From the NCBI GenBank assembly GCA_002269645.1, contig NIVC01000087.1:186001-250000 (forward strand): a DNA stretch of 64,000 nucleotides, given 5' to 3'. This document shows, in pieces, positions 13,261-64,000 of the stretch (positions are counted from its first letter, which is position 1; every line of letters starts with the position of its first letter). The notes below the pieces were generated by a model. The model had not been told where the DNA came from, made no database searches, and was given only the letters and a program-made list of their open reading frames with translations. The DNA comes from Macrostomum lignano. Lineage: Eukaryota. The translations under genes and the position numbers were made by a program.

Positions 13261-29779
<16,519 letters not shown>

Positions 29780-41380: not shown

Positions 41381-42435
41381 TGATATGTTCCTTATTACCC
41401 GTCCTCAACTGTAATCAAGGAACAATCACTTCTAGCTCAATAGCTAGGCAACCCAGTAAGTCAACAGAAGGTATTCAATTACCTTGAGTCCTTAGGAGAT
41501 ATCTCGAAGTATAGCTCGTGTAGTTCTCGTCAATATCGTGTAGTCAGCTTCTGACTTGCGTTCGTAGATCGGGTCCGAGTCTTCTTTCTTCCTTAGAAAT
41601 AGTTCCGGTCGGAATCTGTCGTTCGGAGCAATAGGAAGCTTCCAATTTAACAATGGGATCCCTGCGCCAAACTGCGGTTTGAATTAAGCCTCCTTCTTCT
41701 AGCAGTGCCTCTATGCACTCTAGGTATAGCTCCGGAAACCACTGATAGTCTTCTAAGATCTATCAGGGGCAGTCCTTCTGGAGACTGCAACCAGTGGAGT
41801 CTAAACAGACTCAAGAGTCTCAACAGACTCAAACTAAACTCAAGTCACACTGGACTTGAGCGAGACGTCTCTAACAACAACGGACGCAAATAAGGAAGGC
41901 TTACCGCAACAACCGACCGAGTCTTGGTCCAGGAAGTCTGACTGTGGCTTCCTCTTCGGAGCTCTTCTCCTTCCGGAGGTATTGTGGCTCCGGGTCCGTT
42001 CCGGACCACTTGTATTTATAGGCAAATGGACCCTCATGATGTCACGTGGGTCCAACTCTTCAACTGTCAAAAGGTGTCACGGTTTGGTTGCTGTCAAACA
42101 TGGCAGGTTAGAAAGTTACTCCATTGGTTTAGTGTAAAAACGCGTGATTGGTTATCGCATTCGAGTTATTTTTAGTTACATTTGATTGGTTCACGTGCGT
42201 ACGGTTGAATGATACATTTCTCCTGGGGTTTGAGTTTGACAAGTGCAGGTTACACGTGATTGGGTGATTTCTAAGTTTAGCATGCTCGAGGTCTCTTTCT
42301 TCCTATTGGTTAGTCCGAATATACAAAGTTCAAAGCATACCTTTATTCATACTCTTCAATTTACTACTAAATAAAATGTGCTAGTAGTACATTAACACTT
42401 TTATGTCTTCTTTACGGGAGGTAGAACACTCTACA
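41381..42435 (-). mobile_element. Family-A LTR variant with a replaced U3 region
   Basis: Homologous to the other copies from 41381 to the TATA box (about 42020) and in the terminal ~25 bp (CGGGAGGTAGAACACTCTACA); unrelated in between. Confidence 0.8.
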
Positions 42436-42880
42436 TGGAGTCTAAACAGACTCAAGAGTCTCAACAGACCCAAATAGACTTAAGTCACACTAGACTTGAG
42501 CGAGACGTCTCTAACACAACGGGCGCAAATCAGGAAAGCTTACCGCAACAATTCGACCGAGTCTCGATTGACTTGGTGATCAGGAAGTCCTCCTAAGGCT
42601 TCCTCTTCGGAGCTTCTCCTCTCGTCGGGAGTTGGCTCCTGGTCCGCTTCGGACCGCTTGTATTTATAGGCAACTTTTTGATCCAAAATAGCATCATGAC
42701 AATTCACGTGTTGCGCTAAAAAGGGGAAAATGGCTCATGGCGTATTATTTTGGTTACATCTTTTCTTGGTAACGTAATTCATTCAAAGCTAAGGCGCACA
42801 TGCGTGTACTTACTTACTTATAGTAGCATTATACGATTATCTTCTTTTTACCTTTTTAACGGGAGGTAGAACACTCTACA
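42436..42880 (-). mobile_element. Partial family-A 3' LTR with polypurine tract at about 42881-42897
   Basis: Starts mid-LTR (TGGAGTCTAAACAG) and ends ...CTCTACA; preceded on the minus strand by AAAAAAGGGAG. Confidence 0.85.
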
Positions 42881-43104
42881 AAAACTCCCTTTTTTACGAA
42901 AAACTCGTCCCGAGTTTTAACAATGAAATAAGAAAATCGGTTTGGTGAATTATTGTACACTTTACACGTAAGACCATTTACATATTTACTCGTAGCGTAA
43001 ATTGCGTGTTAATAAGGGTTAGTACTGTTAAGTCTATGCCCCGTTACTGTCTGTTACTCCATCTGCCGGGGATACCTGTTGTCCTCGCGTTGCTGCCGAG
43101 GCAT

Positions 43105-43711
43105 TCAGCCGAAGTTTGTCCTGAGCAGGCTGCTCACCTGATGTGCGGTTCGCGCCACCAGGGATGCCACTGCCCAGTACAGCGACTGAAACTTAGTGAA
43201 TCGCGGATCCTCGGTCCGCTCCAGCAAAAGCAGATAGGCCTCTATGGTCGTAAGTGGTTCTTCTGCACGCACCATAGTCCTGGCGATGTCTAGCAGCCAC
43301 CGCCAGTCGGCCTGATGCTGAAGCGGCCATGGCCACGTTCTTACGGCGACGGCCAGCTGCTCCAGGGTTAGCGCGTCAGCTCTGGGACAGCGAACATCGG
43401 CGCCAGCAGCACAGACGCTGTGTTGGACAGCGGAGCCAGACACACGGTGCACGTCATGATGTCACGTGCCCCGTACCGCTGAAGGCAGCTGAAACACACC
43501 CAATGCCGATTCGAACAGATTTGTACATTGGGCTGGTCACCGCAGAGGGCGCATTGGACCCGCGGCCTGCGACAGACCGGGCAGGCGGAAAGAATCGTCA
43601 CCTCGCCAATTTCTCCAGCCCGTTCGTCGCAGGGGAAGCACACCATTCACAAGTCGGGAGCATCGGCTCCCGTGCCTCGAGGCAGCAAGGGCAGGTATCC
43701 ATCTCGGCCAT
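43105..43711 (-). pseudogene. Accessory double-RING gene B, frameshifted copy
   Basis: Near-identical to 50607-51239 but split over ORFs 43598-43783, 43368-43646 and 43105-43452. Confidence 0.85.
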
Positions 43712-43789
43712 CTGTGGGCGATAGGTATAGGTATAGTTAGAACGATTGAGGATTATTTGAGATACGTAACAAGCATAAAGCATATGTTT

Positions 43790-44329
43790 TACTGGTGAGA
43801 CCTAAAAAGCCAAATAAAATAGCCTCGTGAGAGAAGTAATCGTTTAAGCGCGTGGCAGTATACGTGTAGCGTCCAGTGAAAGGTTTCATAGTCATGCAAA
43901 AACTGCAGTAAATGTCGTTCAATCTCCAAGGGTGACATATGACGCAAAAATCCTTGATTTCTATGAGCGTATAATCCGACACCATTTCTTAAAAGTGCTT
44001 TCGCGGGGCATACTATTACATAAGGGGCATCCTATAATGCCCCTACTAGCGGTTTGCTTCAAACAGTGCATGCAAATAAAATGTCCGTGGTTACAGTATT
44101 GAAACGTGCGCCAAGAATAACAATAGGCGCATTGTCGCAAACTACCTCTACAGAGGGGACAATTCTGCCATGGCTGAATATAATGAGAATTGCTTAAACA
44201 TTGTCCGCAAACTTTATGGTCATTGATGCAAATAGTCGATGGCTTGACAGCCAAGTCATCAGTTAAACATATCGGGCAGTCATATAGCTGCTGAGGTTGG
44301 GGCGCCTGTTTCGACAGTGCGTTGCCCAT
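43790..44329 (-). pseudogene. Accessory double-RING gene A (MGNALSK), both RINGs intact, C-terminal deletion/frameshift
   Basis: ORF 43961-44341 nearly identical to 51357-51977 over the first ~125 aa. Confidence 0.85.
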
Positions 44330-44470
44330 AATTGTCGTCACTTGTAGTCTTGTAGTCTTAAGTCGCTCGGATTAGTCGCCTCTTACGACAAGCTTGCGAA
44401 GCTGTAGAGCTATTCTGACCCGGTCTCTACACGGGTTTGTTCTCGAAACTGCCACTGCCACTGCCCAGTA

Positions 44471-45031
44471 CTACGGCTGAAACCGTACGAAGCGAGGGTC
44501 CTCCGTCCGCTCCAGCAGCTGCAAGTAGGCGTCGATGGCGGTGAGACCGGGTTGATGTCTCGCCAGGTCTCTAGCTATGTCAAGCAAATGCCGCCACGCC
44601 GTCTGATGCTGGAGCGGCCACGGCCATGACCGCACAGCGATCGCCAGCTGCTCCAAGGTTAGGAGGTCCGGTTCGGTGAGCGACAACTCCGGCACTACCG
44701 CCATAGTAGCCAGCAGCAGTGCCGTGGAATGCATCACCGGCTCCAGACACACGGTGCACGTTTGGATATCTCGTGCACCGTACCTATGGAGACAGCCGGC
44801 ACAGGCCCAGTGCCGACTTGGACAGATTTGGTACTGGGGCTGCTCGCCGCACAATGCACATGTGACCCTCGCCCTGCGACATGTTGGGCACGCCGACAGC
44901 ATGGTGATCTCGCCGGTCAGCTGTCGGGCCGCGGTGTCGCAAGAGAGACACACTTGGTGTCCCCATTCGCATGTCGGGACCGTTTCGTCCCGCGTCTCCA
45001 AGCAGCAGGGGCATGCGTCGTCAGCGTTCAT
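44471..45031 (-). CDS. Diverged accessory double-RING gene B' (186 aa, C-terminally truncated)
   Basis: All 16 putative zinc ligands conserved relative to gene B; CCCACAG directly before the ATG. Confidence 0.8.
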   Translation of the reverse strand: MNADDACPCCLETRDETVPTCEWGHQVCLSCDTAARQLTGEITMLSACPTCRRARVTCALCGEQPQYQICPSRHWACAGCLHRYGARDIQTCTVCLEPVMHSTALLLATMAVVPELSLTEPDLLTLEQLAIAVRSWPWPLQHQTAWRHLLDIARDLARHQPGLTAIDAYLQLLERTEDPRFVRFQP

Positions 45032-45099
45032 CTGTGGGTTGTAGGGTCATGATTTATTAGTACATCCTTCATAGTGCTTGCATTTGTGCGTAACAGAGC

Positions 45100-45761
45100 T
45101 CATTGTGGAAACCGTAGAAGCCATATGAAGTAATTGCGTGATAAAATAAGCTGTTTTAACGCATGACAATAAATATGCAGTGTCCAATGATAGGCGTTAT
45201 GGGCTTGTAAAGTATTTTGCAAATGCCGTGCTATCTCGAGGGGTAGCATATGTCGTAATATGCCCGGATGATTATGTGCGTAAAGAATCAATTCGTAGCG
45301 CGAGCGCTGAGCACAACGGGGTACTGGCCAAAACTCCAGCAACCGTTCTATACTCATGGCTGTCAGGGTATGAATATTATATACAGATAAACAGCGTGAT
45401 ACGTCCGGCTTTATGCGACACCACTTCTTGAAAGTGCTGTCCGTCGGCATGGTGTTACAGACAGGGCACCCTATGATGCCTCTGCTAGCGGTGCGTTTCA
45501 AGCACTGCATGCAGATAAAATGATTGTGACGACAGTATTGAAAGGTGCGCCATGAGTAACAATAGGCGCACTGCGTCAGACTACTCCTACATAGGGGGTA
45601 GAGTTGCCAAGATTGAATATAATGCGCGTCACGTAAGCATGTTCCACAGATGCGATGATTATTTATACAAATGGTTGGTGGCTTTATCCACAAATCTTCT
45701 TCCAGACAGACAGGGCATGTTGCTGTACTTGGGGCGCCTGCTTGGACAGTGCGTTGCCCAT
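45100..45761 (-). CDS. Diverged accessory double-RING gene A' (MGNALSK start at 45761; one frameshift near 45715)
   Basis: ORF 45100-45693 gives both RINGs and the full C-terminus; the upstream frame gives MGNALSKQAPQVQQ, and CPVCLEEDLWIKPP follows after the shift. Confidence 0.75.
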
Positions 45762-45849
45762 TGTCGGCGTTGCTTGAAGTTGAAGTCGCTCAGATTAGTC
45801 GCCTCTTACGACAAGCTTGCGAAGCTGTAGAGCTATTCTGACCCGGTCT

Positions 45850-46125
45850 CTACACGGGTTTTGTCTTTTTTTGTAGCTTAACGAGGTCGCAGATTTTAGC
45901 CGTGTGGCTGGCTCTCGTTCGCCGTTTGAGTCTCCTCGTTCTTCGTTGCGATGTGGCGGTTCGTTGAACGTGTGCGATCAGCGTTGTTGCGTGGTTGCGT
46001 GACGAACTTTTGAATGGACGTCGGGACTTCCACATATTGCGATGGCAGTAGTTGCTGTGCCAATAGGTTTGGTGGCTGGAAGTCTCGTCCAAACATTAGA
46101 AAGAATGGCGTATTGTCCGTTCGTT
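45850..46125 (-). pseudogene. Deleted integrase C-terminal fragment of family A
   Basis: Matches 52090-52220 and 52500-52620 (MFGRDFQPPNLLAQQLLPSQYVEVPTSIQKFVTQ joined to NADRTRSTNRHIATK). Confidence 0.85.
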
Positions 46126-47337: not shown

Positions 47338-48292
47338 TTAGGGGGAGGGAATAAGGTAATTAAGGCGACCACCGTATGCGGAGGCAATCCAAGCGTCGGA
47401 CCAGCCAGCGGTAGTCGCGGGGTGAACCGTTTTCCGCGACACGAGTGATTTGCCTTCGAGATTGGGGCAAGGGGAATCGCTGACGTCAAAACAGGGGTCG
47501 TCGACGAACTCAGGGTGACCAACAATGTGTTCCCGATGAAACCGGGGAAGGGTGAGGAAGTAGGCTTCAATGGCCTGACCCCTAGGACTGCCGCGATGGC
47601 GCGTCCAGAAGTGCGACCAGAAGTGGTGGCGGAGTTGGTGTGAGGCAAGGTTAAACAGGCTCGAGGGTGAGTCGGAAACGGGGGAAACAAAGCTCTGGAG
47701 CAATTGGTCGTAGCGTTCACACTCCGAGTCATTAATTTTGTGACAGTATATTTGGCGGAGATATTTGTAGGTAAGAGGACCGGCGGTGTGAAAATCGACG
47801 CAACGCAGAGTGCGGAAGAGTACCTCGAAGTACTGGCGTTGAATGGCTAATTCGACGATTACGGACTTAAAGGCTCCTCGCAGGGGTGGGATATGGAGGC
47901 CCTCGAGGTGGAATAGCATATTCTATCTGCCCCGAAGTGGTCGACCAGAAGTGGTGGCGGAGTTGGTGTGAGGCAAGGTTAAACAGGCTCGAGGGTGAGT
48001 CGGAAACGGGGGGAACAAAGCTCTGGAGCAATTGATCATATCGTTCACATTCCATGTCATCGAGTTTGTTACGGTACACTCGGCGGAGATATTCGTAGTT
48101 GAGAGGATTGGCGGTGTGGAAATTGACACAACGCAGTGTGCGGAAGAGCACCTCGAACTCCTGGCGGTGGATGGCTAGCTCGACGATAGCAGACTTAAAG
48201 GTTCCTCGCAGGGGTGGGGTATGGAGGCCCTCGAGGTGGAATAGAATATTGTCTATCTGTCCCGGGATGTAGCATTGGCAGCTGTAGGAATC
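47338..48292 (-). CDS. 3' part of orphan ORF C, containing a diverged ~330-bp internal duplication
   Basis: ORFs 47867-48151 and 47338-47919 repeat FHLEGLH.PPLRG.FKS.IVELAI...HQLRHHFWS. Confidence 0.6.
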
Positions 48293-48296
48293 GTGG

Positions 48297-49166
48297 TGAT
48301 GTGTTCCTTATTACCCGACTTTCGATAATCAAGGAACAATCACTTCTAGCTCAATAGCTAGGCAACCCAGTAAGTCAATTAAAGGTACTTCTTACCTTGA
48401 CGTCGCTTGCAGATATCTCTTCTGTAGTCTTCGAGTAGATCTCGCTTGGATCTCTATGTGATCTCGTAGATCAGGCGCCTTGATTCTTCAGTTGCTCTGG
48501 TCCTGGTTCCTCTTGTACTTCCGATAAGTTCCTCCGGCCGGTATCTTCAGTCAGGACCAATCAGAGGCCTCGTATTAACAATGGGTACCCTGCGCCGAAC
48601 TGCAGTTTGAATTAAGCCTCCTTCTTTTAGTAGTGCCTCGATGCACTCTAGGTATAGCTTCGGAAACCACTGATAGTCCTCTAAGATCTATCAGGGGCAG
48701 TCCTTCTGGAGACTGCAACCAATGGAGTCTAAACAGACTCAAGAGTCTCAACAGACTCAAATAGACTCAAGTCTCAATAGACTTGAGCGAGACGTCTCTA
48801 ACACAACGGGCGCAAATAAGGAAGGCTTACCGCGACGACTCGACCGAGTCTCGATTGACTTGGTATATCAGGAAGTCCTCCTAAGGCTTCCTCTTCGGAG
48901 CTTCTCCTCTCGTCGGGAGTTGGCTCCTGGTCCGCTTCGGACCGCTTGTATTTATAGGCAAGTTTTTGGTCCGGAATAGTATCATGACAATCCACGTGTT
49001 GCGCTAAAAGGGGAAATGGCTCATTGCGTATCATTTTGGTAACATCTTCTTCTGGTAGCGCAATTCATTCAAAGCTTAGGCGCGCATGCGTGCACTTACT
49101 TACTTGTAGTAGCATTATACGATTATCTTCTTTTAACCTTTTTAACGGGAGGTAGAACACTCTACA
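48297..49166 (-). repeat. Family-A 3' LTR (outer)
   Basis: Near-identical to 56340-57209. Confidence 0.95.
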
Positions 49167-49510
49167 AAATCTCCCTTTTTTACGAAAAAACTCGTCCCGA
49201 GTTTTAACAATGAAACAAGAAAATCGGTTGAGTAAATTTTTGTTCACCTTATACGTAAGACTATTTATATTTTTACTCGTAGCGTAATTGCACGTTAATA
49301 AGGGTTAGTACTGTTAAGTCTTTGTACAGTTCCTTGGCCGTTACATCGGGAATACCTGTCGTCCTCGCGTTGCTGCCGAGGCATTCAGCCGAAGCTTGTC
49401 CTGAGCAGGCTGCTCACCTGATGTGCGGTTCGCGCCACCAGCGATGCCACTGCCCAGTACAGCGACTGAAACTTAGTGAATCGCGGATCCTCGGTCCGCT
49501 CCAGCAAAAG

Positions 49511-50363
49511 TGATGTTTTCCTTATTACCTGACTTTCGATAATCAAGGAACAATCACTTCTAGCTCAGCAGCTAGGCAACCCAGTAACTCAACAGAAGGT
49601 ATTCAATTACCTTGAGTCCTTTGGAGATCTCTCGGAGTAGTTCTCGATTTGCTTTAGTTGCAGGTGTAGTCACTTCTGACTTTCGTTTGTAGATCGGGTC
49701 CGATTCTTCTTTCTTCTTCAAATAGTTCCGGCCGGATTCTGTCGCTCGGACCAATGGGAAGCTTCCGAATTAACAATGGGATCCCTGCGCCGAACTGCGG
49801 TCTAAATTAAGCCTCCTTCTTCTAGCAGTGCCTCTATGCACTCTAGGTATAGCTTCGGAAACCACTGATAGTCCTCTAAGATCTATCAGGGGCAGTCCTT
49901 CTGGAGACTGCAACCAATGGAGTCTAAACAGACTCAAGAGTCTCAACAGACTCAAATAGACTCAAGTCTCAATAGACTTGAGCGAGACGTCTCTAACACA
50001 ACGGCGCAAATAAGGAAGGCTTACCGCGACGACTCGACCGAGTCTCGATTGACTTGGTATATCAGGAAGTCCTCCTAAGGCTTCCTCTTCGGAGCGCTCC
50101 TCTTCCGTGGGGAGAATGGCTCCGGTACCGCTTCAGATCGCTTGTATTTATAGGCAACTTTTTGTTCCAAAATAGCATCATTACAATTCTTGTGTTGCGC
50201 TAAAAGGGGAAAATGGCTCATGGCGTATTATTCTGGTAACATCTTTTTCTGGTAGCGTGATTCATTCAAAGCTTAGGCGCACATGCGTGTACTTACTTAC
50301 TTGTAGTAGCATTATACGATTATCTTCTTTTTTTTGTTTTTGCGGGAGGCAGAACACTCTACA
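49511..50363 (-). repeat. Family-A 3' LTR (inner), positioned inside a remnant of gene B
   Basis: The left flank 49340-49510 is the 3' end of gene B; a PPT lies on its upstream side. Confidence 0.92.
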
Positions 50364-50606
50364 AAATCTCCTTTTTTTACGAAAAAAACTCGTCCCGAGT
50401 TTTAACAATGAAATAAAAATCTTGGGTAATTGAATTATTCCACACTTTAACTTTAAATTGGTTACATAATTCTCTTTATTAACATATATGCACGTAATAT
50501 ACATTGTGTGTTAATAAAGGTTAGTGGTGTTGAGTCCGCGCTCAGTTAAAGTTAATCATATCTTCTGCCGGGGATACCTGCTGTCCTCGCGCTGCTGCCG
50601 AGGCAT

Positions 50607-51239
50607 TCAGCCGAAGCTTGTCCTGAGCAGGCTGCTCACCTGATGTGCGGTTCGCGCCACCAGGGATGCCACTGCCCAGTACAGCGACTGAAACTTAGTG
50701 AATCGCGGATCCTCGGTCCGCTCCAGCAAAAGCAGATAGGCCTCTATGGTCGTAAGCGGTTCTGCTGTACGCACCATAGTCCTGGCGATGTCTAGCAGCC
50801 ACCGCCAGTCGGCCTGATGCTGAAGCGGCCATGGCCACGTTCGTACGGCGACGGCCAGCTGTTCCAGGGTTAGCTCATCCGGCTCCGCCAGCGTCAGCTC
50901 CGGTACGGCGAGCATCGGCGCCAGTAGTACGGATGCTGTGTTGGACAGCGGAGCCAGGCACACGGTGCACGTCATGATGTCTCGTGCACCGTACCGCTGA
51001 AGACAGCTGAAACACACCCAATGCCGATTTGAACAGAGTCGTACATTGGGCTGGTCGCCGCAAAGGGCACATTGGACCCGCGGTCTGCGACAGACGGGGC
51101 AGGCGGTAAGGATCGTCACGTCGCCAATTTCTCGCGCCCGCCCGTCGCAGGGGAAGCACTCCTGGTGCCCCCATTCACAAGTCGGGAGCATCGGCTCCCG
51201 TGCCTCGAGGCAGCAGGGGCAGGTATCCATCTCGGTCAT
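50607..51239 (-). CDS. Accessory gene B: tandem double RING-finger protein with helical C-terminus (210 aa, intact)
   Basis: RING1 C-x2-C-x10-C-x3-H-x2-C-x2-C-x15-C-x2-C; 6-aa linker; RING2 C-x2-C-x8-C-x3-H-x2-C-x2-C-x11-C-x2-C. Confidence 0.88.
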   Translation of the reverse strand: MTEMDTCPCCLEAREPMLPTCEWGHQECFPCDGRAREIGDVTILTACPVCRRPRVQCALCGDQPNVRLCSNRHWVCFSCLQRYGARDIMTCTVCLAPLSNTASVLLAPMLAVPELTLAEPDELTLEQLAVAVRTWPWPLQHQADWRWLLDIARTMVRTAEPLTTIEAYLLLLERTEDPRFTKFQSLYWAVASLVARTAHQVSSLLRTSFG

Positions 51240-51309
51240 CTGTGGGCGATAGGTATAGGTATAGTTAGAACGATTGAGGATTATTCAAGATACGTAACAA
51301 GCATATGTT

Positions 51310-51965
51310 CTATCGGTGAGACCTAAAAAGCCAAATAAAATAGCTACGTGAGAGCACTAATCGTTTAAGCGCGTGGCAGTATACGTGTAGCGTCCAGTGA
51401 AATGATTCATGGTCATGCAAAAACTGCCGCAACTGTCGCTCAATCTCCAAGGGTGACATATGACGCAAAAATCCTTGATTTCTATGAGCGTATAAGAGTA
51501 GCTCGTCGCGACCGCTGAACGAAGCGAGGTACTGGCCAAAACTTCGATACTCATAGCGGTTAAGGTGTGCATAATGTAAACGGATAAACAACGCGCTGGG
51601 TCAGGTATAATACGACACCATTTCTTAAAAGTGTTTTCGCGGGGCATACTGTTACATAAGGGGCATCCTATAATGCCCCTACTAGCGGTTTGCTTCAAAC
51701 AGTGCATGCAAATAAAATGTTGATGGTTACAATATTGAAACGTGCGCCAAGAATAACAATAGGCGCATTGTCGCAAACTATCTCTACAGAGGGGACAATT
51801 CTGCCATGGCTGAATATAGTGTGAATCACTTAAACATTGTCCGCAAACTTTATGTCCATTGATGCAAATAGTCGGTGGCTTGACAGCCAAGTCATCAGTT
51901 AAACATATCGGGCAGTCATATAGCTGCTGAGGCTGGGGCGCCTGTTTTGACAGTGCGTTGCCCAT
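51310..51965 (-). CDS. Accessory gene A: putative N-myristoylated tandem double RING-finger protein (frameshift near 51535)
   Basis: MGNALSK; RING1 C-x2-C-x12-C-x3-H-x2-C-x2-C-x12-C-x2-C; 6-aa linker; RING2 with the same spacing as in gene B. The C-terminus continues in ORF 51310-51591, matching A'. Confidence 0.85.
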
Positions 51966-52085
51966 AATTGTCGTCAATTTGTCGCTGTCTTTGTGTCGCT
52001 CGGATTAGTCGCCTTTTACGACAAGCTTGCGAAGCTGTAGTGCTATTCTTTATCCCGGTCACTACACGGGGTTGTTCTCGAAACT

Positions 52086-55000
52086 CTAGCGTGGTCGTAG
52101 GTTGTAGCCATGTGGCTGGCTCACATCTGTCGTTTGAGTCTCCTCGTGCTTCGTCGCGATGTGGCGGTTCGTTGATCGCGTGCGATTAGCGTTGTCTAGT
52201 GTCGGTAGAAACGTCGCTGTGTCAGTGTTGATCTTCTTTAGTCGATGAATGTGTACGTAGAACTGGTGCTGATGTGGATCTTGTACATTAGCCAGGCGTG
52301 CCGTTGTCGGTGACGTTAGTTGGACCACTCGATGGGGTCCTTTATACTTCTGTGCATGTTTATGCGTCTGCTGCGGCGGGTAGTGTAGGTAAACGATGTC
52401 GCCGGCCGTCAGGGTTGTCGATCTCGCGTCGTTGCCGGTGGTCAGAGCCACCTGGTTGTCAATGTTGTGCTTAGCGATCTTCCATGCGAGGTGTAGTTGC
52501 GTGACGAATTTCTGAATGGAAGTCGGTACTTCCACGTACTGCGATGGTAGCAATTGCTGTGCGAGCAGATTCGGCGGTTGGAAGTCTCGTCCAAACATTA
52601 GGAAGAATGGCGTATTGTCCGTTGATCGATGAATAGCGCTGTTGTAGGCCATTGTTACAGATTGCAGGTAGATGATCCAGTCTTCCGGCTGTTGGTGCGC
52701 GAAATGTGTAATCATGTCGTGCAGGTTGCGGTGAAACCGTTCAACCATGTTTGCCTTCGGATTGTAGGTCGATGTGTAGATCTGCGTAATGTTGAGAATC
52801 CTTACGACTTGCTGAAACAGTTGCGATGTAAACTGCGATCCGTTGTCCGATGTGAGGTTCTTCGGCGTGCCGTACTTGCAAATGATTTCGTTGAAGAAAC
52901 TCATTGCCACTGTCTGAGCTGTGATGTCCGGTATCGGTATGGCGATAGCAAACTTCGAGAAGATATCCAAGGCGGTTAGAATGTAGGTGTAGGCGATGCC
53001 CTGGAGACAGCTCGGTGGCAGTGGTCCGGTGATGTCGATGCTTAGACAGTCCATTGTAGTCGACTTCGGAATGGACTGTAGCTGCGGTTTCTGTCGTCGT
53101 CCTGTCTTTGATGCAGCACATGAATGGCAGTTGTTGCAATACTGCTTGATGTCGCCATACATAGTTGGCCAAAAGTAGTATTGTTCCACTCTCGCGATGG
53201 TCTTTGCGGCCGACAGGTGTCCAGCTAGTGGGTTGTCGTGCAGCTCGTTGAGAATTGCTTGCCGAAACGAATATGTTACGTAGATCTTAGGTTTATTGTC
53301 GCTCATCCAGTAGAGCCGTGACTTATTGATTGTTAGGTGTTGTCGTTGCTTGCGTAGGAATTTTCGTTCCATGGGACTGAGTTTGATGTTCTTGTCGTCG
53401 TCTTTAACCGCTTGGTAGAAGTTGTCGCGCTCGGTTTCATCCACCAACTCCTTGATGTTAGGGATTGGATGAATGGCGTTGACTTCATAGGCTCTTGACA
53501 GGGCGTCCGCGGCTTTGTTGGTAATTCCTGGTTTGTAGACGAGTTTGTAGTTGTAATCCTGGATCTTGAGTGTCATCCTGATGAGTCGGTTGTTGGTCTG
53601 TAGTGTAATCTTCTTTGGTTTCGTCTGGTTTGTCTTGAAGTAGCTGCATTTGATGTCGGTTGGTATCTTGTAGATCATCGGTTGGATATGCGCATCCGTT
53701 GGACAAATCATTGGCTTTTCCGTTGCCGTTGCTTTGGCGACTACTGCTATCAGTAGTATCACGATGATCCAGTATAGCCAGTTTTTCCACTTTTTGGACC
53801 TTGCCGTTGTCTTTGCTGGCATTGGCCGCGATCGCCATTCGTTATCTTCCATGTCCGCATCATATCCTTCCGGTTGTTCCATTGGCTGTTTCAGGCGGAA
53901 GGCTTCTGATTCGCTTTGCTTTTTGGTTATTTCAGTATCTTCGTCTGCAGCTTCTTCCGATGTTTCTGTTGTTTCACTCCATTGCGTTTGGTATCTTTTC
54001 TCTGTCTTGTAGTCGACCGTTTGAATATAGGCTTCACCATTTCGTTTGTATCGGATCTCGTAGCATTCGTCGCTGTCGGAACTCGGCTTTTCTTTTATCT
54101 GTTCTTCTTCCATTTCTTCATCTTTCCATTGTATTTCGTAGCCTTGATCGCTGTCGGAGCTTAGATTTTCCGCTCCCAGTTCTTCCTGCATTCCTTCTTC
54201 GGCTCGGTATCCGCTCGTGTCATCATGCACCTCGCAGTCGTGATCGTTGCCGTAACTTATACATTCTTCTTCTTCCTTCATTTCTTTGTCTTTCGTGCTT
54301 GTTTTGTCGTCATCCACTGTTGTCGATTCATAGTTGTTTTCTCTGCCAGTCTTCATCTTTTCTTCGTTGCCGGTGTCGCTCTCCGCCTCCTCCCTTTTCT
54401 TGTGATTTACTTTCTTCCTGTTTTCTCTGCTGTCTCCGGTGGTCTCTTTTAATTTGATCATTTCGGTTTCATTCGTCTCTTCTGTCTTGTCAGTGTTGTC
54501 CTCGTGCGTTGTCTTTTTTTCGATCAGGCTGATGTCAAGTTCCGGGACTGTGAAGTCCATTTCCAAGTCGTCAATTGTGAACACTTGCTGTTCCTGCTGC
54601 TCATTTTCCGGTGTGTACGTGATGGCATTCGCGTATCGTGGCATTGCTTGCGTCGGCTGTCTTTGTGTGTACCTGACGTTGCGTGGCCTGTAGCCATTAT
54701 TTCTGAAGCGGCCTTCGTTTCCGAAGCGGCCATCATTTCCGGAGCGGTCATTATTTCCGAAGCGTCTATCATTTCCGAGGCGTCTCATGCCTTGTTGTTG
54801 GCGATTTTGATACTGCTGCCATGGTTTCTGCGGCTTCTGATTGTTGAATATCTGTCGCGGCTTGTCGTATCTTGTTGACCAATGAGGACAATTAATCTGA
54901 TAATGTCCTTCTTGTCCGCAGTAGTAACATCTGGCTGAGGCTTGTTCATTTCGTCTTTTTTGTTCGGCGATAGCAGCTGTCTGGTGCTGCATTAATTTGT

Positions 55001-55118
55001 TTAATTGCTGCGTCAGTTTCTGCACTTCATTGTTGCCTGTCGTCATTAATGGGGCACTGGCTTCCCATTGCATTCCGCAACGCAAAAGGTCTTCTTCGGT
55101 TTCGATATTTTCACGCAA
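52086..55118 (-). CDS. Gag C-terminus (CCHC) - acidic linker - hydrophobic segment - [PR/RT/RNaseH deleted] - integrase
   Basis: CYYCGQEGHYQINC; WLYWIIVILLIAVVAKATA; RNase H tail YKPGITNKAADALSR; HHCC (ELHDNPLAGH...CNNCHSC); SIDITG, TSDNGSQF, MVERFHR; KYKGPHRV. No DTG/DSG protease and no YxDD motif. Confidence 0.9.
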   Translation of the reverse strand: MRENIETEEDLLRCGMQWEASAPLMTTGNNEVQKLTQQLNKLMQHQTAAIAEQKRRNEQASARCYYCGQEGHYQINCPHWSTRYDKPRQIFNNQKPQKPWQQYQNRQQQGMRRLGNDRRFGNNDRSGNDGRFGNEGRFRNNGYRPRNVRYTQRQPTQAMPRYANAITYTPENEQQEQQVFTIDDLEMDFTVPELDISLIEKKTTHEDNTDKTEETNETEMIKLKETTGDSRENRKKVNHKKREEAESDTGNEEKMKTGRENNYESTTVDDDKTSTKDKEMKEEEECISYGNDHDCEVHDDTSGYRAEEGMQEELGAENLSSDSDQGYEIQWKDEEMEEEQIKEKPSSDSDECYEIRYKRNGEAYIQTVDYKTEKRYQTQWSETTETSEEAADEDTEITKKQSESEAFRLKQPMEQPEGYDADMEDNEWRSRPMPAKTTARSKKWKNWLYWIIVILLIAVVAKATATEKPMICPTDAHIQPMIYKIPTDIKCSYFKTNQTKPKKITLQTNNRLIRMTLKIQDYNYKLVYKPGITNKAADALSRAYEVNAIHPIPNIKELVDETERDNFYQAVKDDDKNIKLSPMERKFLRKQRQHLTINKSRLYWMSDNKPKIYVTYSFRQAILNELHDNPLAGHLSAAKTIARVEQYYFWPTMYGDIKQYCNNCHSCAASKTGRRQKPQLQSIPKSTTMDCLSIDITGPLPPSCLQGIAYTYILTALDIFSKFAIAIPIPDITAQTVAMSFFNEIICKYGTPKNLTSDNGSQFTSQLFQQVVRILNITQIYTSTYNPKANMVERFHRNLHDMITHFAHQQPEDWIIYLQSVTMAYNSAIHRSTDNTPFFLMFGRDFQPPNLLAQQLLPSQYVEVPTSIQKFVTQLHLAWKIAKHNIDNQVALTTGNDARSTTLTAGDIVYLHYPPQQTHKHAQKYKGPHRVVQLTSPTTARLANVQDPHQHQFYVHIHRLKKINTDTATFLPTLDNANRTRSTNRHIATKHEETQTTDVSQPHGYNLRPR

Positions 55119-55122
55119 AAGT

Positions 55123-55572
55123 CTATCCGAAGTGACGGCTGTGCGTTTTTATTACGTGCAAGATGAGGTTTTGTTCGCGATCCATCAATCGCTGTCTTTC
55201 TCTGGCGGCCAATTCTGCCGCTCCCAGTGGCGGTTGGTCCGCCGCTTGCAGCGGTGGCTGATGCAGTGCCTTAATTATCTGGCGGATATCGTCCACAAAG
55301 GCGAGGAAGGATTCTGTTGCTTGCATCCTTCTGTTATGTAACTTGTGCAGCAGCACTGATCTGTTTGTGCCGCAACGGTTGAAATGCGCGCGCAGTTGAA
55401 TGATTAGTGCTGGATAATTTTGCTGTGTTGCTGCATCCAGCTTGCCGTAAATTTCTCGCGCAGTACCTTGGAGAAGAGGTGGCAGCAGCTGTGCCTTCTC
55501 TGGATTTTGTAGGTTGTATTCCCTACATACCAGGTCAAAATGGTCGACGAATGTGTTAAAATCTTTCTCCAT
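55123..55572 (-). CDS. Gag N-terminal/capsid region of family A
   Basis: DFNTFVDHFDLVCREYNL...LLPPLLQGTAREIY...; homologous to the gag at 60702-61487. Confidence 0.8.
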   Translation of the reverse strand: MEKDFNTFVDHFDLVCREYNLQNPEKAQLLPPLLQGTAREIYGKLDAATQQNYPALIIQLRAHFNRCGTNRSVLLHKLHNRRMQATESFLAFVDDIRQIIKALHQPPLQAADQPPLGAAELAARERQRLMDREQNLILHVIKTHSRHFG

Positions 55573-56339
55573 CGAGAAAGTACCGACCGTTTCTTTGATG
55601 TCTCTGTGTACCGTTGGATTGCGCCGCCCATGTTGTTGATAGGATAGAACGGTAGTTCAGATCTGGATCGATTTGTAACGGATCGTCCAGTGTGGTGTTT
55701 GCCTCGGAATAAACCTCGACTGTAACGAATTGCCTTGTGGTGTCGATTTGTTATTCGCTGGCCTCGGATGCGGTGTGGCTTGCTGCCACTGGTTGTCCTC
55801 AAATGAACTTGTTCTGTTCGCTTGCTGATTTCGCACTTATGCGGCGTCCCGCAAAGTGTATCTTCAAGTTGGGATGGACTTGTCTTTTGCTTTGCAAAGG
55901 CTTTTTCTCGTCTGTGATTCTCTCTCTTTGTCAATTAACTCCGCTCTTCACGAAGTTTCAATTAATTTCGGTTTGTTTTAGTTTTTGTGCCGGCAAAGTG
56001 TTTCAGTTATTTTTTGTTTGTTTTGCGTCGACGATTTTTATTTTCGGTTTGTTTTCAGTGTACCGATGAATTTAATTTCGGTTTATTTTAAACTCACACT
56101 TGCTCGAGCTCGTCAAAACAAAAATTTAACACGCGTGCTCAAACTGTACTCAAATTGGACAGGTGCTCAAACCTGTACACCAAATTTTTACTCGAGTTTC
56201 ACAACGTACGGACTTAAAAAGTGTTAACTCTAACACGTGCGCGCAAAATTAATGAAGTCGCTCTGTCGTCACGTTACAATAGCTTGATCAGGGCTATTGC
56301 TCAAAGTTTGAGTAGTGCCGAGAGGGCGAGATCACCAAT

Positions 56340-57209
56340 TGATGTGTTCCTTATTACCCGACTTTCGATAATCAAGGAACAATCACTTCTAGCTCAATAG
56401 CTAGGCAACCCAGTAAGTCAATTAAAGGTACTTCTTACCTTGACGTCGCTTGCAGATATCTCTTCTGTAGTCTTCGAGTAGATCTCGCTTGGATCTCTAT
56501 GTGATCTCGTAGATCAGGCGCCTTGATTCTTCAGTTGCTCTGGTCCTGGTTCCTCTTGTACTTCCGATAAGTTCCTCCGGCCGGTATCTTCAGTCAGGAC
56601 CAATCAGAGGCCTCGTATTAACAATGGGTACCCTGCGCCGAACTGCGGTTTGAATTAAGCCTCCTTCTTCTAGTAGTGCCTCGATGCACTCTAGGTATAG
56701 CTCCGGAAACCACTGATAGTCCTCTAAGATCTATCAGGGGCAGTCCTTCTGGAGACTGCAACCAATGGAGTCTAAACAGACTCAAGAGTCTCAACAGACT
56801 CAAATAGACTCAAGTCTCAATAGACTTGAGCGAGACGTCTCTAACACAACGGGCGCAAATAAGGAAGGCTTACCGCAACAACTCGACCGAGTCTCGATTG
56901 ACTTGGTGATCAGGAAGTCCTCCTAAGGCTTCCTCTACGGAGCTTCTCCTCTCGTCGGGAGTTGGCTCCTGGTCCGCTTCGGACCGCTTGTATTTATAGG
57001 CAAGTTTTTGGTCCGGAATAGTATTATGACAATCCACGTGTTGCGCTAAAAGGGGAAATGGCTCATTGCGTATCATTTTGGTAACATCTTCTTCTGGTAG
57101 CGCAATTCATTCAAAGCTTAGGCGCGCATGCGTGTACTTACTTACTTGTAGTAGCATTATACGATTATCTTCTTTTAACCTTTTTTAACGGGAGGTAGAA
57201 CACTCTACA
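56340..57209 (-). repeat. Family-A 5' LTR (TATA at about 56991-56998, splice donor at 56438)
   Basis: Followed on the minus strand by AT plus a TGG-starting PBS. Confidence 0.95.
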
Positions 57210-57482
57210 GCGGTTCAGGTAGGACTCAGCAATGGTGAAGGTGAAGTCGGCTACGACATCGAAGCGTCCGTCACAATTGAAGAGATCATAAAGTAGAGAA
57301 TCAGGAATAGCAGGCTTAACAGTGCGAGGACACGGAAAGGGCGAAAGATAGGAGGGGTGATAATAAATGAAGTTACGACGATGTGGGCAATAGTACGTTT
57401 CACACAGGTAGTTGAATAACGGAGTATCATCAAAAGCAGTAAGGCCCTGGATGGCGATGCGCATTTGCCTGAATATGTTCAT
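57210..57482 (-). CDS. 5' part (91 codons) of orphan ORF C, interrupted by the 48297-57209 insertion
   Basis: Joins in frame to 48292 when the insertion and one TSD copy are removed. Confidence 0.7.
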
Positions 57483-57751
57483 GTTTAAATTAGAGTAAAC
57501 GATTAAAAGTATTTACTGTATTATGAAGTTTCCGAGACGTCAAAAGCTGGATGTGCGGAGTGTCGGTCCTGCAAGTAGTTTCGATGACGCTGAAGAAATG
57601 ATTAACCAAATGATGCTGAATTCTGTAGAATTTGTAATAGTGCAAAGAGTGCCAGTAGGATAATGCAGAGGATGATATAGTCGGGAAGGAGTTGGGGGCA
57701 GTGTTGGAAGCGTGTTCATTGGTTAGTTAGGGAATTCTGAACTATGCCTGA

Positions 57752-57986
57752 TGATGTGTTCCTTATTACCCGACTTCGATAATCAAGGAACAATAACTTC
57801 TAGCTCAGTAGCTAGGCAACCCAGAAGGTATTCATTTACCTTGAGTCCTTATGAAGTGTCTCTTCAATGTCGATCTCGGGTAAATCTCGTCTGTAGTCTC
57901 TTGTGACTGTCGTTCGTAGTTCAGGTCCGAGTCTTCTTTCCTTCTTCAAATAGTTCCAGCCGGATTCTGTTGCTCGGACCAATGGG
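57752..57986 (-). mobile_element. Truncated family-A LTR (U5 end)
   Basis: Homologous to the first ~235 bp of the other copies. Confidence 0.85.
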
Positions 57987-60021: not shown

Positions 60022-60681
60022 TGATGTGTTCCTTATTACCAGTCCTTTGATAATCGAGGAACAATCACTTCTAGCTCGGTAGCTAGGCAACCCAGTTATC
60101 AGACAAAGGTACTTCTTACCTTGACTTGCTTCTTCTTCGGAGTACTCCTTGAATTTCTGTAGATCTCGCTTTGATCTCTGTGTGATCTCTTAGATCGGGC
60201 GCCTTAGTTCCTCTACTGCTTCTGGTCCTGGTTCCTTTGTATTTCGCTTGTCGTTACTTCCGGCCGGTATCTGCAGTCAGGACCAATCAAAGGCTTCGTA
60301 TCAACAATGGGTACCCTGCGCCTAATAGCGGTATCAGTTAAGCCTTCTTCTAGCAGTGCCTTGATGCACTCTAGGTAATGCTCCGGATATCTCTAGTAGC
60401 TCCTCTAAGATCTGCTAGGGTAGTCCTTCGGGCGACTACTGCCAAGGGAGTCTAAACAGACTCAAGAGTCTCCACAGACTCAAATAGACTCAAGACACAA
60501 TAAACTTGAGCGAGACGTCTCAACAACAACTGGCGCATATAAGAAAGGCTTACCGCAACACTTGATCAAGTCTTTCGTTCGACTGGTGAATCAGGGAGTC
60601 TTCCTAAAGACACCCTCTTCGGAGCTTCTCCTATCGTCGGGAGTTGGCTCCGGTGCCGCGTTGGGCCTCTTGTATTTATAG
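60022..60681 (-). mobile_element. Diverged family-A LTR, truncated just beyond the TATA box
   Basis: TGATGTGTTCCTTATTACC start, homologous blocks, ends at TGTATTTATAG. Confidence 0.85.
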
Positions 60682-61487
60682 ACTTCTTCACCCTGACTCA
60701 CTTGAAAGGCATCGACCAACTGCATGACTTCCGTTCCTTCACTAAAGAGTTCGACTTGATCACACGCTCGTTTGGACTATCGGAGAACGCAAAGATTCGG
60801 CTCTTCCCGCGACTACTGAACGACCTTCTTAAACTCGAGTACAGCCGCCTTTCTGCCGCGGTCCAAGCCTCCTATCCAGCCACCATTGAGGCACTATCTC
60901 AACGCCTTCGAGAAGTAACCATTGGTTCGGCTCTAACGCTGCATAATGCAGCAACCCGGAAGCAGCAGTACCGCGAACCGTTCCTGCCCTACTTCACCGA
61001 CATCCGTCAAAAGCTCCGGTCAGCTATGCCGGAAATACCTGAAGAATTTCCGGAGGGTGCCGGTCCAGAAACACCACCCGCGAACCAAGCCGTAATCGAC
61101 CAGCGCAACCGAGACTTCCTTGCTACCCTAATGGCTACGACTATCAACAATGCACTGCCCTACATCAAACGAGAACTCTTAAAGCAAAATATCACCACGG
61201 AAAGTACTCTAATTAACAAGGCCATCCGCGCTGAACAAATCCGCGACTCCACCATGGACTCTGATGGCACTGACTTGAAGGCTCTGACTGAGCGCCTAAC
61301 AACCCTAGAGAAAACGACGAAGGAAGCCAATCAACAGGTAGTTGCCTCTCTGCAAACACAAACCAAGCCACTCACTGCTAATATGCAACAAAAGCCGACT
61401 TGTTGTCATTGCGGTCGACCTGGACATTATGCCGCCGACTGTCGTCGAAGGAATGACCAACAACCTCGTCCTTTCCGACCTAACTAA
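60682..61487 (+). CDS. 5'-truncated Gypsy gag (capsid-like + CCHC), opposite orientation
   Basis: DFRSFTKEFDLITRSFGL...; CCHCGRPGHYAADC; homologous to the family-A gag. Confidence 0.8.
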
Positions 61488-61559
61488 GGCGATCGAAGAA
61501 AAGCAGCCCAATATGGCTCTGACGTCCCGCGGAGTCGTTAGACCAGCAGGGACCGCCAC

Positions 61560-64000
61560 TTGACTTACTTGACTTAGCTGCAGGGCGGTCCGAAGACGCA
61601 GCGGGGAGGCGAGCGTCGCCCATTCCGCTAATCCCTGAAAGACCCGCATAGGCTAGGGCGCGGGGCCGGTCAGGGAGGTCTGCCGGTCCTGTCTGCAGCG
61701 TTGTCTTCGGTGGGGAAGACGGAGGCTCGCTTGGTGGCCCGGAGGAACCGGATGAGCCGTGGATGTTCTCGGGCCGGCAAACGTCGTCCAGGGACGGGTT
61801 GGGCCCGAGGTGGTTGAGCCGGTCTCGGTTGAAGGCCGGGCAGTAGCAGACGAAGTGCTTGGCGTCTTCGTTCTCGAGGTTGCAGAAAGGGCAGAGTTCA
61901 CTCCGGCGAACACATCGGAGGAAGCAGTGCCTGGCAAAGCAACCGTGACCTGTGAAGGTCATAGTGAGAGCGCGGATATCTTTTCGATTTTGATTCAAAA
62001 GGATTCTCCGCAGCTTGAGGGACGGATTGGGCACTGCCGCACGAGATTGGCGGCAGTTGGAGATGCCATCCCATCTGCGCAAGTGCAGGATGTCCGCCCA
62101 GTCGTTAATCTGACGATTAATGACTGGCGGGGATGGGGGCCAGGGGCACGGGGCCAAGGAGCGAGCCGGAACAGCCCGCCTTAGCGAGGGAGTCGGCGAG
62201 CTCGTTACCTTTGAAGCCGGCATGTCCTGGGATCCACGTGAGCCGGACGGTGTTCCTCCGAGCCAGCTTGTTGAGCTGCCCGATACAGTCGCGGACTGTT
62301 CGGGAGTTCGTAGTGGTGTGACACAGGGCCTATAAAGCGGCCTGGCTGTCAGAGTGGAAGAAGATTCTTCTGTCCTTGAAGTCCTTGCAGTGGAGCTCAG
62401 CTGCACAGGAGCTGATGGCAAGGACTTCATTCTGGAAGACGCTGGAGAGTCTGCCAGTGTGTTGGGCGTGAGTAGCAATCACGCGGCCGTTGATAAGGAT
62501 ACAGACTCCAAAGCCGGATAAACCGTCTTTGGAGGATCCGTCAGTGAAGCAGTGAACCTCCTGAGGGGCCCAGCTGTCGTTGGCGTTCTCCCTGGAGGGG
62601 ATAGTGACCTTGAAGCGTTGGTAGAGATTGAGGGAGCGCGGTTCAGCGTCCGAAAGGACAGCCGCACTCCCACTCTCCTCCAGAACTTTAAGGCACAGGT
62701 CAGAGTGCGGCAGGAGCTTGCGCTTCGCCATCGCTCTTTGTGGCTTGAAGCTAGCGCCAGCCTCGATGAGCCGGCGGGTGGTTTTAGCAGCCTCGCGACG
62801 GACAAAGATGTCCAGAGGCGGGAGGCAAAGAAAGGCGTTGAGGCCGTCAAAGGGAGCAGAGAGCGGGGCATTCAGGATCATGCGGCACGCACGTCCCTGC
62901 ACCTTTTTGAGGGCTTCGTGGCAGGTTTTAATCTGCAAGGCGCTGGTCCAGACCAGGCCGGCGTAAGTAACGGCCGGTCGGACCATTGCGGTATAGATCC
63001 ACCAGAGCCGCTTTGGGGTGAGGCCCCAGGTGGTGCCGACGGCTCTGCGCAGCTGCGCAAGAATCGCGAGGGCTTTTTTGGTTTTGGCCTGGACGTGGGT
63101 GGACCAGCTCAGCCGGTGGTCCAGCGTAACGCCGAGACACTTGGTTTGCTTGCAGGATGGAATTTCCACCCCGTAAAGCTTTAGTGGGCGAATACGCCAG
63201 TTTACCCTGCTGGTGAACATGATCGCGACAGTTTTGGTCTCGGAGAGCCTGAGGCCGCACCTGTCCGCCCAACGTTCAGCAGAGCGAATGAAGTTTTGCA
63301 AAAGATCTCTAAGGGTTTCAGGTGACGGTCCGGATGCCACGGCTGTGACATCATCGGCGTAACCGACCTTGAGGATGGGGTCAAGATGGCTGTCCTGGAG
63401 GAGCTCATCGATGACCATGTTCCAGAGAACTGGAGAGAGGACACCGCCCTGGGGGCTGCCTTTGCAGACGGTTACCGTCCGTTGGTGGCCCAACAGGTGT
63501 GCGGTGGCAGTACGGTGGCTGATCATATACATGATCCACCGGGTGAGGTGCGAGTGGGTTCCTCTAGCACGTAGAGCTCTGTCAAAAGCCTCAAAGAGGA
63601 CATTATCAAAGGCTCCAACAATGTCGAGGAAGACAGCGAGAGCGTAGCCATTACCAAGAACGGCTTTCTCCAGCATGTCAACCAGAACGTGAAGCGCGCT
63701 CTCCGTGGACCTGCCTGCCCGAAAGGCATGCTGGTTCTCACTGAGCGGCTTGTTCTTCAGTTCCACAGAGAGGAGGCGCCAGAGCACCAGTCTCTCTAAC
63801 AGCTTCACCAATGAGGAGGTGAGGCTAATTGGTCTGAAGGATTTAATGGACCGGTAGTCCGGTCGGCCAGGCTTGGGGATAAAGACCACCTTGGCCTCGG
63901 TCCAGGGTTTCGGAACAAAGCCGAGAACAATGCAAGCTTTCAGAAGCCGGCAAAGGTTCCGCAGGAAACCGGTGCATTTCACCGCCTCCCGCAGGAAGGC
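61560..64000 (-). mobile_element. Non-LTR retrotransposon with RT + RNase H + C-terminal zinc finger (Loa/Lian-like), continues beyond the window
   Basis: RPISLTSSLVKLLERL, FLDIVGAFDNV, GSPQGGVLSPVLW, YADD, CLGVTLD; RNase H FTDGS...QNEVLAI...SDSQAAL; CPFCNLENEDAKHFVCYC; short-repeat 3' tail near 61560-61578. Confidence 0.92.

Follow-up and report, generated by a model that had tools for sequence, protein, structure and literature searches.

The 64,000-nt stretch of Macrostomum lignano DNA analyzed here (GenBank assembly GCA_002269645.1, contig NIVC01000087.1, positions 186,001 to 250,000 of the forward strand; hereafter the window, numbered from its first letter) carries on its minus strand a Ty3/Gypsy retrotransposon that is bounded by long terminal repeats (LTRs) and holds two genes, A and B, besides gag and pol. 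An open reading frame (ORF) search placed A within 51357-51977 (ATG at 51965) and B at 50607-51239 (210 aa). Both lie in the sense orientation of the element, 3' of the integrase stop (52086) and 5' of a purine tract and the LTR start at 50363, as a first-pass annotation of the sequence had reported.

Each translation contains two consecutive C3HC4 motifs, with the C-x3-H spacing, the 6-residue linker and the shared spacing of the second motif exactly as described in that annotation. The first motif (RING1) was spaced C-x2-C-x12-C-x3-H-x2-C-x2-C-x12-C-x2-C in A and C-x2-C-x10-C-x3-H-x2-C-x2-C-x15-C-x2-C in B, and the second (RING2), preceded by the linker, C-x2-C-x8-C-x3-H-x2-C-x2-C-x11-C-x2-C in both. 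A six-frame regular-expression scan of the window returned 10 single and 4 complete double C3HC4 motifs, all within minus-strand copies of A or B; no C3HC4 motif was found in 200 composition-preserving shuffles of the window. The double RINGs of A and B were 32% identical (E 2e-10), an alignment on which we class the two genes as paralogues, as had been proposed. The window holds three A-type genes (A, A' and A'') and three B-type genes (B, B' and B''), matching the earlier count, plus a duplicated fragment of the B tail within 49167-49509. Neither A nor B has introns.

The reading frame of A is broken. Its last ~80 residues as read were out of frame relative to A', A'' and a relative from outside M. 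lignano, and the true C-terminal piece was found in a second frame, where it matches A' and A''. Between the true C-termini of A and B no similarity was detectable (BLASTP E 1.9, hhalign probability 0.4%). The two had been called unrelated from the start, a claim that survives, although the A C-terminus then compared was the out-of-frame one. The length and end of B agree with those of two outside relatives, P0048 (208 aa) and P0049 (214 aa), and intact proteins of the A/B type measured 206-214 aa. In all M. lignano copies A starts with MGNALSK, which fits the N-myristoylation pattern; starts of this type are absent from the outside relatives P0048-P0051. A Trp-Pro motif is common to A and B ~35-50 residues past RING2, an anecdotal likeness. 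GC content at third codon positions (GC3) was 0.62-0.73 in B-type genes versus 0.37-0.51 in A-type genes and integrase in all lineages seen, including contigs L002 and L003, a contrast suggesting that A and B have long separate histories.

Selection on the two genes was estimated as the ratio of nonsynonymous to synonymous divergence (dN/dS) by the Nei-Gojobori method (NG86) within single reading-frame segments. Close copies of the A double RING gave 0.11-0.24. A and A' differed at a proportion of 0.17 of nonsynonymous and 0.86 of synonymous sites (pN and pS), the latter saturated. For B against B' the ratio was 0.24 overall (dS 1.2), 0.35 in the RINGs and 0.14 in the C-terminal domain, and for B against pieces of B'' it was 0.15 and 0.34. 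The order A then B is kept in both subfamilies present in the window, with synonymous sites at or near saturation. Values of 0.11-0.35, not near 1, indicate purifying selection on A and B and imply that both were functional while the subfamilies diverged.

The assignment of the motifs as RINGs draws on an alignment of nine family sequences (26-45% identity). Fifteen of the 16 zinc-ligand columns were invariant in it, as were a Pro and an Arg of RING1; the sixteenth ligand column deviated in the degenerate A' alone. RING1 fits the RING-HC pattern C-x2-C-x(9-39)-C-x(1-3)-H-x(2-3)-C-x2-C-x(4-48)-C-x2-C, as does RING2 save for a first loop of 8 residues against a minimum of 9. Pfam Sina_RING was matched by eight of the nine members (best E 4e-5), and zf-RING_2 and zf-C3HC4 were matched too, all below threshold. 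Searched against PDB sequences, the family profile matched RINGs at E 1e-4 to 1e-2: RING1 fell on TRIM21 (E 1.4e-4), TRIM5, TRIM32, SIAH1 and the protein RING2, and the second motif on BRE1 (E 3.4e-4) and MAT1. In the HMMER alignment the family's CPICL...H..C..C...CPxCR was laid on CPICL...CPVCR of TRIM21. RING E3 ligases contact their E2 through an aliphatic residue and a Pro, and an Arg following the last Cys serves as the 'linchpin' of E2~ubiquitin (E2~Ub). RING1 reads C-P/Y/C-I/V/C-C, with the later Pro, Cys and Arg, in all nine members. RING2 has no Arg after its eighth Cys in any of the nine, the position being N, L, G or K (Lys in one).

AlphaFold2 (AF2) modeled B with a predicted local distance difference test score (pLDDT) of 63, ranging by 10-residue block from 66-85 over residues 1-80 and 57-74 over residues 81-100. 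The intact outside A-type protein was modeled with a pLDDT of 71.5 and a predicted template modeling score (pTM) of 0.66. Both models, which include no zinc atoms, consist of a pair of small zinc-finger-like modules and then a helical domain. When PDB was searched with Foldseek, either model returned almost exclusively RING and U-box E3 domains. The top match, an engineered RING1B-BMI1 single-chain fusion, was weak (E 0.03-0.04, TM about 0.2-0.26), and SIAH1 RING-ZnF1 was returned with a probability of 0.96. The models superposed on RING/U-box domains at 1.7-3 Å over ~50 residues (probability <=0.99, PDB E > 0.03). Among the viral models of BFVD only generic giant-virus RINGs were matched. The fold check suggested in the first pass thus returned RING/U-box matches from models of moderate confidence, and these models predict two RING domains per protein and, C-terminal to them, an alpha-helical domain of ~100 residues that is not the same in A and B. 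A and B are most likely ubiquitin-ligase-like helpers.

The window copy of the element is defective and non-autonomous (Table 1). Its outer LTRs, ~870 bp each with TG...CA ends, align over 871 nt, and no exact target-site duplication was seen. Relative to sister copies gag has one frameshift, being a single ORF in loci L008 and L007, and one ~3.9-kb internal deletion in pol has removed the protease, the reverse transcriptase (RT) and most of RNase H; the integrase (IN) frame is open up to its stop. Apart from one gap the gag-pol remnant is collinear with the full-length copy L008. Two LTR copies rather than the single one first described lie 3' of B, behind the polypurine tract (PPT). The inner LTR belongs to a different subfamily from the outer pair and the 3' end is duplicated, so that the locus is a mosaic of subfamilies. 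In the second cluster (42435-46121) the order is IN remnant, A', B', spacer, A'', B'' and LTR fragment. A' retains a complete C-terminal domain in a single frame, and B' lacks about its last 25 codons, where the next cassette starts.

Table 1. Features of the RING-bearing element and the second cluster, in window coordinates unless a contig or locus is named (UTR, untranslated region)
Feature	Position	Strand	Remarks
5' LTR	56340-57209	-	TGT start, CA end; 98.7% identical to 48297-49166
gag-pol remnant, broken	52086-55572	-	ORFs; Pfam: CCHC knuckle, Integrase_H2C2 and rve only
Integrase zinc-binding (H2C2) domain and catalytic core	52758-53270	-	Pfam PF17921 E 2.5e-20, PF00665 E 2.8e-14
IN-A spacer with conserved ~75-nt non-coding block	51966-52085	-	
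ORF A, A-type tandem-RING gene	51310-51965	-	1 frameshift; MGNALSK start
Double RING of A (C3HC4 x2, 6-aa linker)	51654-51914	-	Regular-expression scan; sub-threshold Pfam
A-B spacer	51240-51309	-	TTCTAAC branch-point-like motif, pyrimidine-rich run, CCCACAG abutting the B ATG
ORF B, B-type tandem-RING gene	50607-51239	-	Intact, 210 aa, GC3 0.71
Double RING of B	50958-51221	-	Regular-expression scan
3' UTR and polypurine tract AAAAAAAGGAGA	50364-50606	-	Tract a few bases ahead of the LTR
Inner LTR copy	49510-50363	-	Different subfamily; 85% identical to outer LTR pair
Second copy of B tail, 3' UTR and PPT	49167-49509	-	Within 1.2-kb tandem duplicate of 49510-50732 (83.7% identity)
Outer 3' LTR	48297-49166	-	Partner of 5' LTR, 98.7% identity
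Integrase remnant of second cluster	45896-46121	-	Internally deleted
A', A-type gene of ~70%-identical subfamily	45100-45761	-	1 frameshift, 1 RING1 zinc ligand substituted
B', B-type gene of the A' subfamily	44471-45031	-	186 aa; 64% aa identity to B
Second IN-A-type spacer and A''	43789-44470	-	A'' at 43789-44329, 1 internal deletion, double RING intact
B''	43105-43711	-	At least 2 frameshifts; RING2 alone intact
3' UTR and partial LTR closing second cluster	42435-43104	-	91.5% identical to 48722-49510
Sites of the ~75-nt block	51966-52085; 44330-44470; ~45762-45905; L001 1323-1441; L007 13746-13856; L008 9040-9159		

The surrounding DNA is a nest of insertions and rearranged transposable element (TE) fragments. 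The RING-bearing family has additional LTR copies at 39924-40778, 41381-42025 and 57749-57986. A sense-strand LTR ORF (…QHVDCH.TIPDQKLAYKYKRSEADQEPTPDERRSS…) is kept between copies (48798-49034, 56870-57076 and 40209-40631, minus strand) and forms part of UniProt gene model A0A1I8G201; the ORF probably does not represent a gene. In the gag-pol ORF 52086-55118 (minus strand), residues ~180-470 comprise a long, highly acidic low-complexity stretch followed by a transmembrane-like hydrophobic helix, WLYWIIVILLIAVVA, which in the full-length copies L008 and L007 alike sits between the CCHC knuckle and the start of the protease. The combination is unusual for a Gypsy gag. Searches of Rfam found no family in window 48000-57500, and a search for heat-shock elements like those reported in some LTRs of M. 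lignano gave a single match, at chance level and not within an LTR. Other mobile elements in the window are a different Gypsy gag-pol with a 1074-aa ORF (3894-7588, minus strand), a LINE-like RT element (33731-36894, plus strand), and a related LTR and gag on the plus strand (60022-61487) interrupted by a LINE-like element with RT and RNase H (61480-63982, minus strand). An 18-bp satellite array of 5.4 kb (~290 units, 18450-23870), with strong G and A skew and several open frames, sits between two S6-kinase-like host gene exons (16054-16515 and 24175-24756, minus strand). Three more tandem-repeat arrays (13767-14448, 14988-15949 and 16632-17785) contain long repetitive ORFs in several frames and adjoin a kinase exon.

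The window integrase is 98% identical to that of a 1488-aa M. lignano 'retrovirus-related polyprotein' (UniRef A0A0M4HFM6 / ALD16272.1), to which the gag-pol remnant aligns over the last 504 residues only. Seven further loci (L007-L013) were reached in the same assembly via members of this polyprotein cluster, and Pfam found protease, RT, RNase H and IN in the sister copies L007 and L008. The element belongs to the Ty3/Gypsy (Ty3/Mdg4) LTR retrotransposons; its CCHC knuckle of standard type, and RT placed ahead of IN, presumably argue against the CsRN1 and Gmr1 clades. The original Ty3/Gypsy assignment is upheld by Integrase_H2C2, rve and the CCHC knuckle, with the qualification that protease and reverse transcriptase are missing from the window copy. 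In all seven further loci an A-type ORF begins ~120 bp past the integrase stop. It spans 124-144 residues in L008-L012, with the double RING intact in four (L008, L010, L011 and L012) and one zinc ligand substituted in L009; the A of L013 carries a frameshift and that of L007, at 70 residues, is degenerate. The LTR begins ~85 bp after the A-type similarity ends in the six L008-type loci, and several hundred bp after it in L007. The window element is ~1.05 kb longer than these copies, the extra DNA comprising the A C-terminal domain and the whole of B. Since an outside relative has the longer form, that form is probably ancestral.

Relatives outside M. lignano were sought by several routes. Neither B nor an A-type alignment retrieved anything in word-indexed protein searches, not even itself, which leaves the genes essentially without annotation; B also had no record in an exact-sequence look-up. 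A full HMMER pass of a B+B' profile over 1.84 billion representative proteins retrieved five. One is a chimera, the gene model UniProt A0A1I8G201 ('RING-type domain-containing protein'), which joins pieces of B, B', B'' and the LTR ORF. The remaining four are ORFs (130-214 aa) of short Logan contigs, which come from five sequencing runs (SRR31628392/394/425/437 and SRR31252246), and two of the ORFs have informative context: P0050 follows an integrase and P0048 an A-type tail. No cellular homologue of A or B was found among the 1.84 billion representatives. A metagenome scan with the A-type alignment matched 177 pattern stretches and yielded no relatives. A scan of viral contigs gave three matches, and the two inspected, a generic single RING-H2 of a giant virus and a phage zinc protein, both lacked the double-RING architecture.

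The Logan contigs place the genes in the element lineage. Contig L001 carries, in order, an integrase C-terminus 63% identical to that of the window, a 119-nt spacer and an intact 206-aa A-type ORF, 47% identical to A, whose TAG abuts the ATG of a B-type ORF. Contig L002, from another run, carries an L001-like A tail (45/49 residues identical), the same TAG-ATG junction and a complete 208-aa B-type ORF, 29% identical to B. Together they show that the IN-A-B order is conserved in a lineage at 63% integrase identity, which argues for A and B as part of the element lineage rather than a capture at the window locus. The linkage to pol that the first-pass annotation had singled out for checking was found family-wide, in the seven further loci and in the divergent relative. 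That annotation had also named three outcomes against its proposal: a captured host gene, dN/dS near 1 without linkage to pol, and Cys/His arrays that do not fold as RINGs. None of the three was borne out, the third as judged from profile matches and moderate-confidence fold comparisons. Contig L005 (SRR31252246), AT-rich at 31% GC, holds a 130-aa double-RING ORF of the A/B family (655-1047) directly after a textbook polypyrimidine/CAG acceptor, with a Trp-Pro-containing continuation in a different frame; the contig may come from a quite different organism and represent a relative that has introns or has decayed.

No description of RING or C3HC4 accessory genes in LTR retrotransposons was found in the open-access literature, in line with the earlier remark, made there subject to a search, that no Gypsy lineage is known to carry a double-RING gene pair. 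A survey that reports clades of M. lignano LTR retrotransposons makes no mention of RING accessory genes (PMC12801592).

The spacers point to how A and B may be expressed. An AG stands directly ahead of the B-type ATG in all five lineages, as CCCACAG-ATG in three of them. The latter junction is invariant in the three window spacers and in L003, L004 and L006, with TTCTAAC or TTACTAAC upstream; the B-type start reads TTGTAG-ATG in L001 and L002, and in L005 a pyrimidine run precedes GCAG-ATG. In M. lignano 38.8% of genes are trans-spliced and ~7% of transcripts are multi-gene precursors (PMC5730564). Given this host trans-splicing and the AG before every B-type ATG, cis- or trans-splicing is the suggested route, and A and B are probably expressed from processed sub-genomic RNAs. 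Conservation of the ~75-nt block of the IN-A spacer exceeds that of the coding DNA on either side, 57 columns being invariant across six copies including L001. RNAalifold drew three stems in it, with three compensatory pairs in L001; it holds CTAATC with an AG 20-30 nt further on, and no Rfam family was found for it. Candidate roles are a splice/branch region, an export or packaging signal, and an internal regulatory RNA.

Taken together, A and B are a genuine accessory-gene cassette of a Ty3/Gypsy lineage in macrostomid flatworms, not captured passengers. The explanation we favor as a whole, with a probability of roughly 0.55, is that this cassette is selected in the element, encodes a ligase-like RING pair and is expressed from processed RNA. 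A and B would be RING-type E3 ubiquitin-ligase-like proteins, the two RINGs of one chain acting as a RING heterodimer. RING1, with the aliphatic residue of C-P-I/V-C, the Pro before the last Cys and the Arg after it, would be of the E2~ubiquitin-activating type, and RING2, lacking that Arg, would probably support it. Target choice may fall to the divergent C-terminal domains, the candidates being host factors that hold the element in check and proteins of the element itself. The myristoylation-type signal of M. lignano A suggests membrane association, and the position of the B-type ATG after a splice-acceptor-like AG suggests host processing of a polycistronic element RNA. Ligase activity, target and counter-defence role are what we infer from these features. 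Of the ubiquitin-ligase-like counter-defence module first proposed, the RING-like, selected and pol-linked parts stood; the counter-defence part is put forward as conjecture.

Several observations weigh against this explanation. None of the Pfam matches reached its gathering score, all Foldseek E-values exceeded 0.004 for moderate-confidence models built on alignments only 7-9 sequences deep, and the C-terminal domains matched nothing in the fold searches. B is the sole intact gene in the window, with A, A', A'' and B'' broken and B' truncated. B and the A C-terminal domain are absent from all seven further M. lignano loci, full-length copies included, where A is reduced to 70-144 residues. 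The B-less copies imply that the pair is dispensable in cis or supplied in trans, and that the recently amplified subfamily can do without the full pair in cis. In L001 and L002 the stop codon abutting the start codon would also fit translational reinitiation as an alternative to splicing. In its most specific form, with two single-chain 'RING heterodimers' destroying host factors that silence or restrict the element and expressed via host spliced-leader trans-splicing just before the start codons, the explanation is doubtful.

The strongest competing account, which we regard as unlikely, makes the tandem RINGs a non-catalytic scaffold, a small myristoylated matrix-like RING protein in the style of arenavirus Z that would serve in assembly or enzyme regulation. 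Many RING folds are not ligases, the proteins are small, RING2 lacks the post-Cys8 Arg throughout, the hydrophobic helix in the family's gag-pol hints at membrane-linked steps, and M. lignano A starts with MGNALSK. That start is, however, missing from P0048-P0051, the resemblance to Z reached only E 0.3, no viral matrix-like protein was found in BFVD, and all nine members keep the aliphatic residue, Pro and Arg of E2-activating RINGs in RING1. An improbable variant keeps the ligase-like activity and turns it on the element itself, with turnover of Gag or integrase limiting or timing its own activity. The RING evidence serves it equally, and the loss of B and the A C-terminus from the sampled full-length copies could be the loss of a brake, which fits as well as loss of a dispensable helper; long-term purifying selection in at least three lineages and retention at 63% integrase identity argue instead for a benefit to the element. 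That A and B are a captured host RING gene decaying neutrally, or host RING genes lying beside TE fragments, is largely refuted and hardly credible: such passengers would suit a window of rearranged fragments with mostly broken copies, and a UniProt model does name a RING-type protein at such a locus, but that model is a chimera, the genes have no introns and no cellular homologue, dN/dS is low, and the post-integrase position recurs in all seven further loci and in the divergent relative.

Most descriptions of LTR retrotransposons credit them with gag and pol and, at most, one additional env-like gene, host-manipulating accessory proteins being a hallmark of complex retroviruses. A selected RING ligase-like pair would show the accessory strategy of complex retroviruses in an invertebrate transposon. 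Retained through deep divergence and lacking a cellular homologue, the pair would also define a new tandem-RING protein family, and the acceptor-before-ATG pattern would be a concrete case of a mobile element using host trans-splicing. M. lignano is a tractable model with known PIWI-interacting RNA biology and transgenesis, in which the targets of retrotransposon accessory proteins could be addressed.

In position, A and B resemble the env-like or extra 3' ORFs of other elements (errantivirus/Gypsy env, Cer/Tas env-like genes, plant Gypsy/Copia), which occupy the same sense-strand site between the integrase stop and the PPT/3' LTR and, like A and B, are probably expressed from processed sub-genomic RNA via an acceptor just upstream. 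They differ in being two paralogous, cytosolic-type tandem-RING proteins rather than an envelope-like glycoprotein; no signal peptide, hydrophobic anchor or fusion-protein match was found in Pfam, fold searches or ORF translations.

The SINA/SIAH likeness noted at first holds for the RING alone. The C3HC4 RING with C-x3-H is common to both, Sina_RING was the best Pfam match, and the SIAH1 RING was among the top sequence and fold matches, whereas all A/B scores lie below the Pfam cut-off of 29.3 bits and a second RING follows 6 residues on. SIAH-type zinc fingers and the TRAF-like substrate-binding domain gave no Pfam match in the A/B family, whose C-terminus is predicted to be all-helical. SIAH family membership was ruled out, the match being to the RING model only, below threshold and with the rest of the SIAH architecture absent. 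RBR ligases (parkin and HOIP) also have two RING-like zinc domains per polypeptide, but parkin and HOIP had low Foldseek probabilities against the A/B models (0.13-0.33). RBR (RING1-IBR-RING2) membership was likewise ruled out, with no IBR match and a RING2 that is ordinary C3HC4 and not of the catalytic-Cys type. Functionally, A and B would come closest to an obligate RING heterodimer built into a single chain. In RING1B-BMI1, BRCA1-BARD1 and MDM2-MDMX two RINGs are paired and only one keeps the E2~Ub-activating Arg, as in A and B; the difference is that the A/B RINGs share one natural chain with a 6-residue linker, in which they may pack against each other.

The first-pass annotation had also likened A and B to viral RING proteins, and this was not borne out at the level of homology: neither PDB profile searches nor BFVD fold searches returned herpesvirus ICP0, baculovirus IE2/PE38 or arenavirus Z as a specific relative. 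Arenavirus Z, a small N-myristoylated RING protein, shares the pattern of M. lignano A, with a profile match at E 0.3 only. What A and B would have in common with these proteins, and with lentiviral Vif, Vpu and Vpr/Vpx, is the logic of a mobile parasite using the ubiquitin system. The lentiviral proteins act through host cullin-RING ligases, recruiting a host RING for this, whereas the M. lignano element encodes its own.

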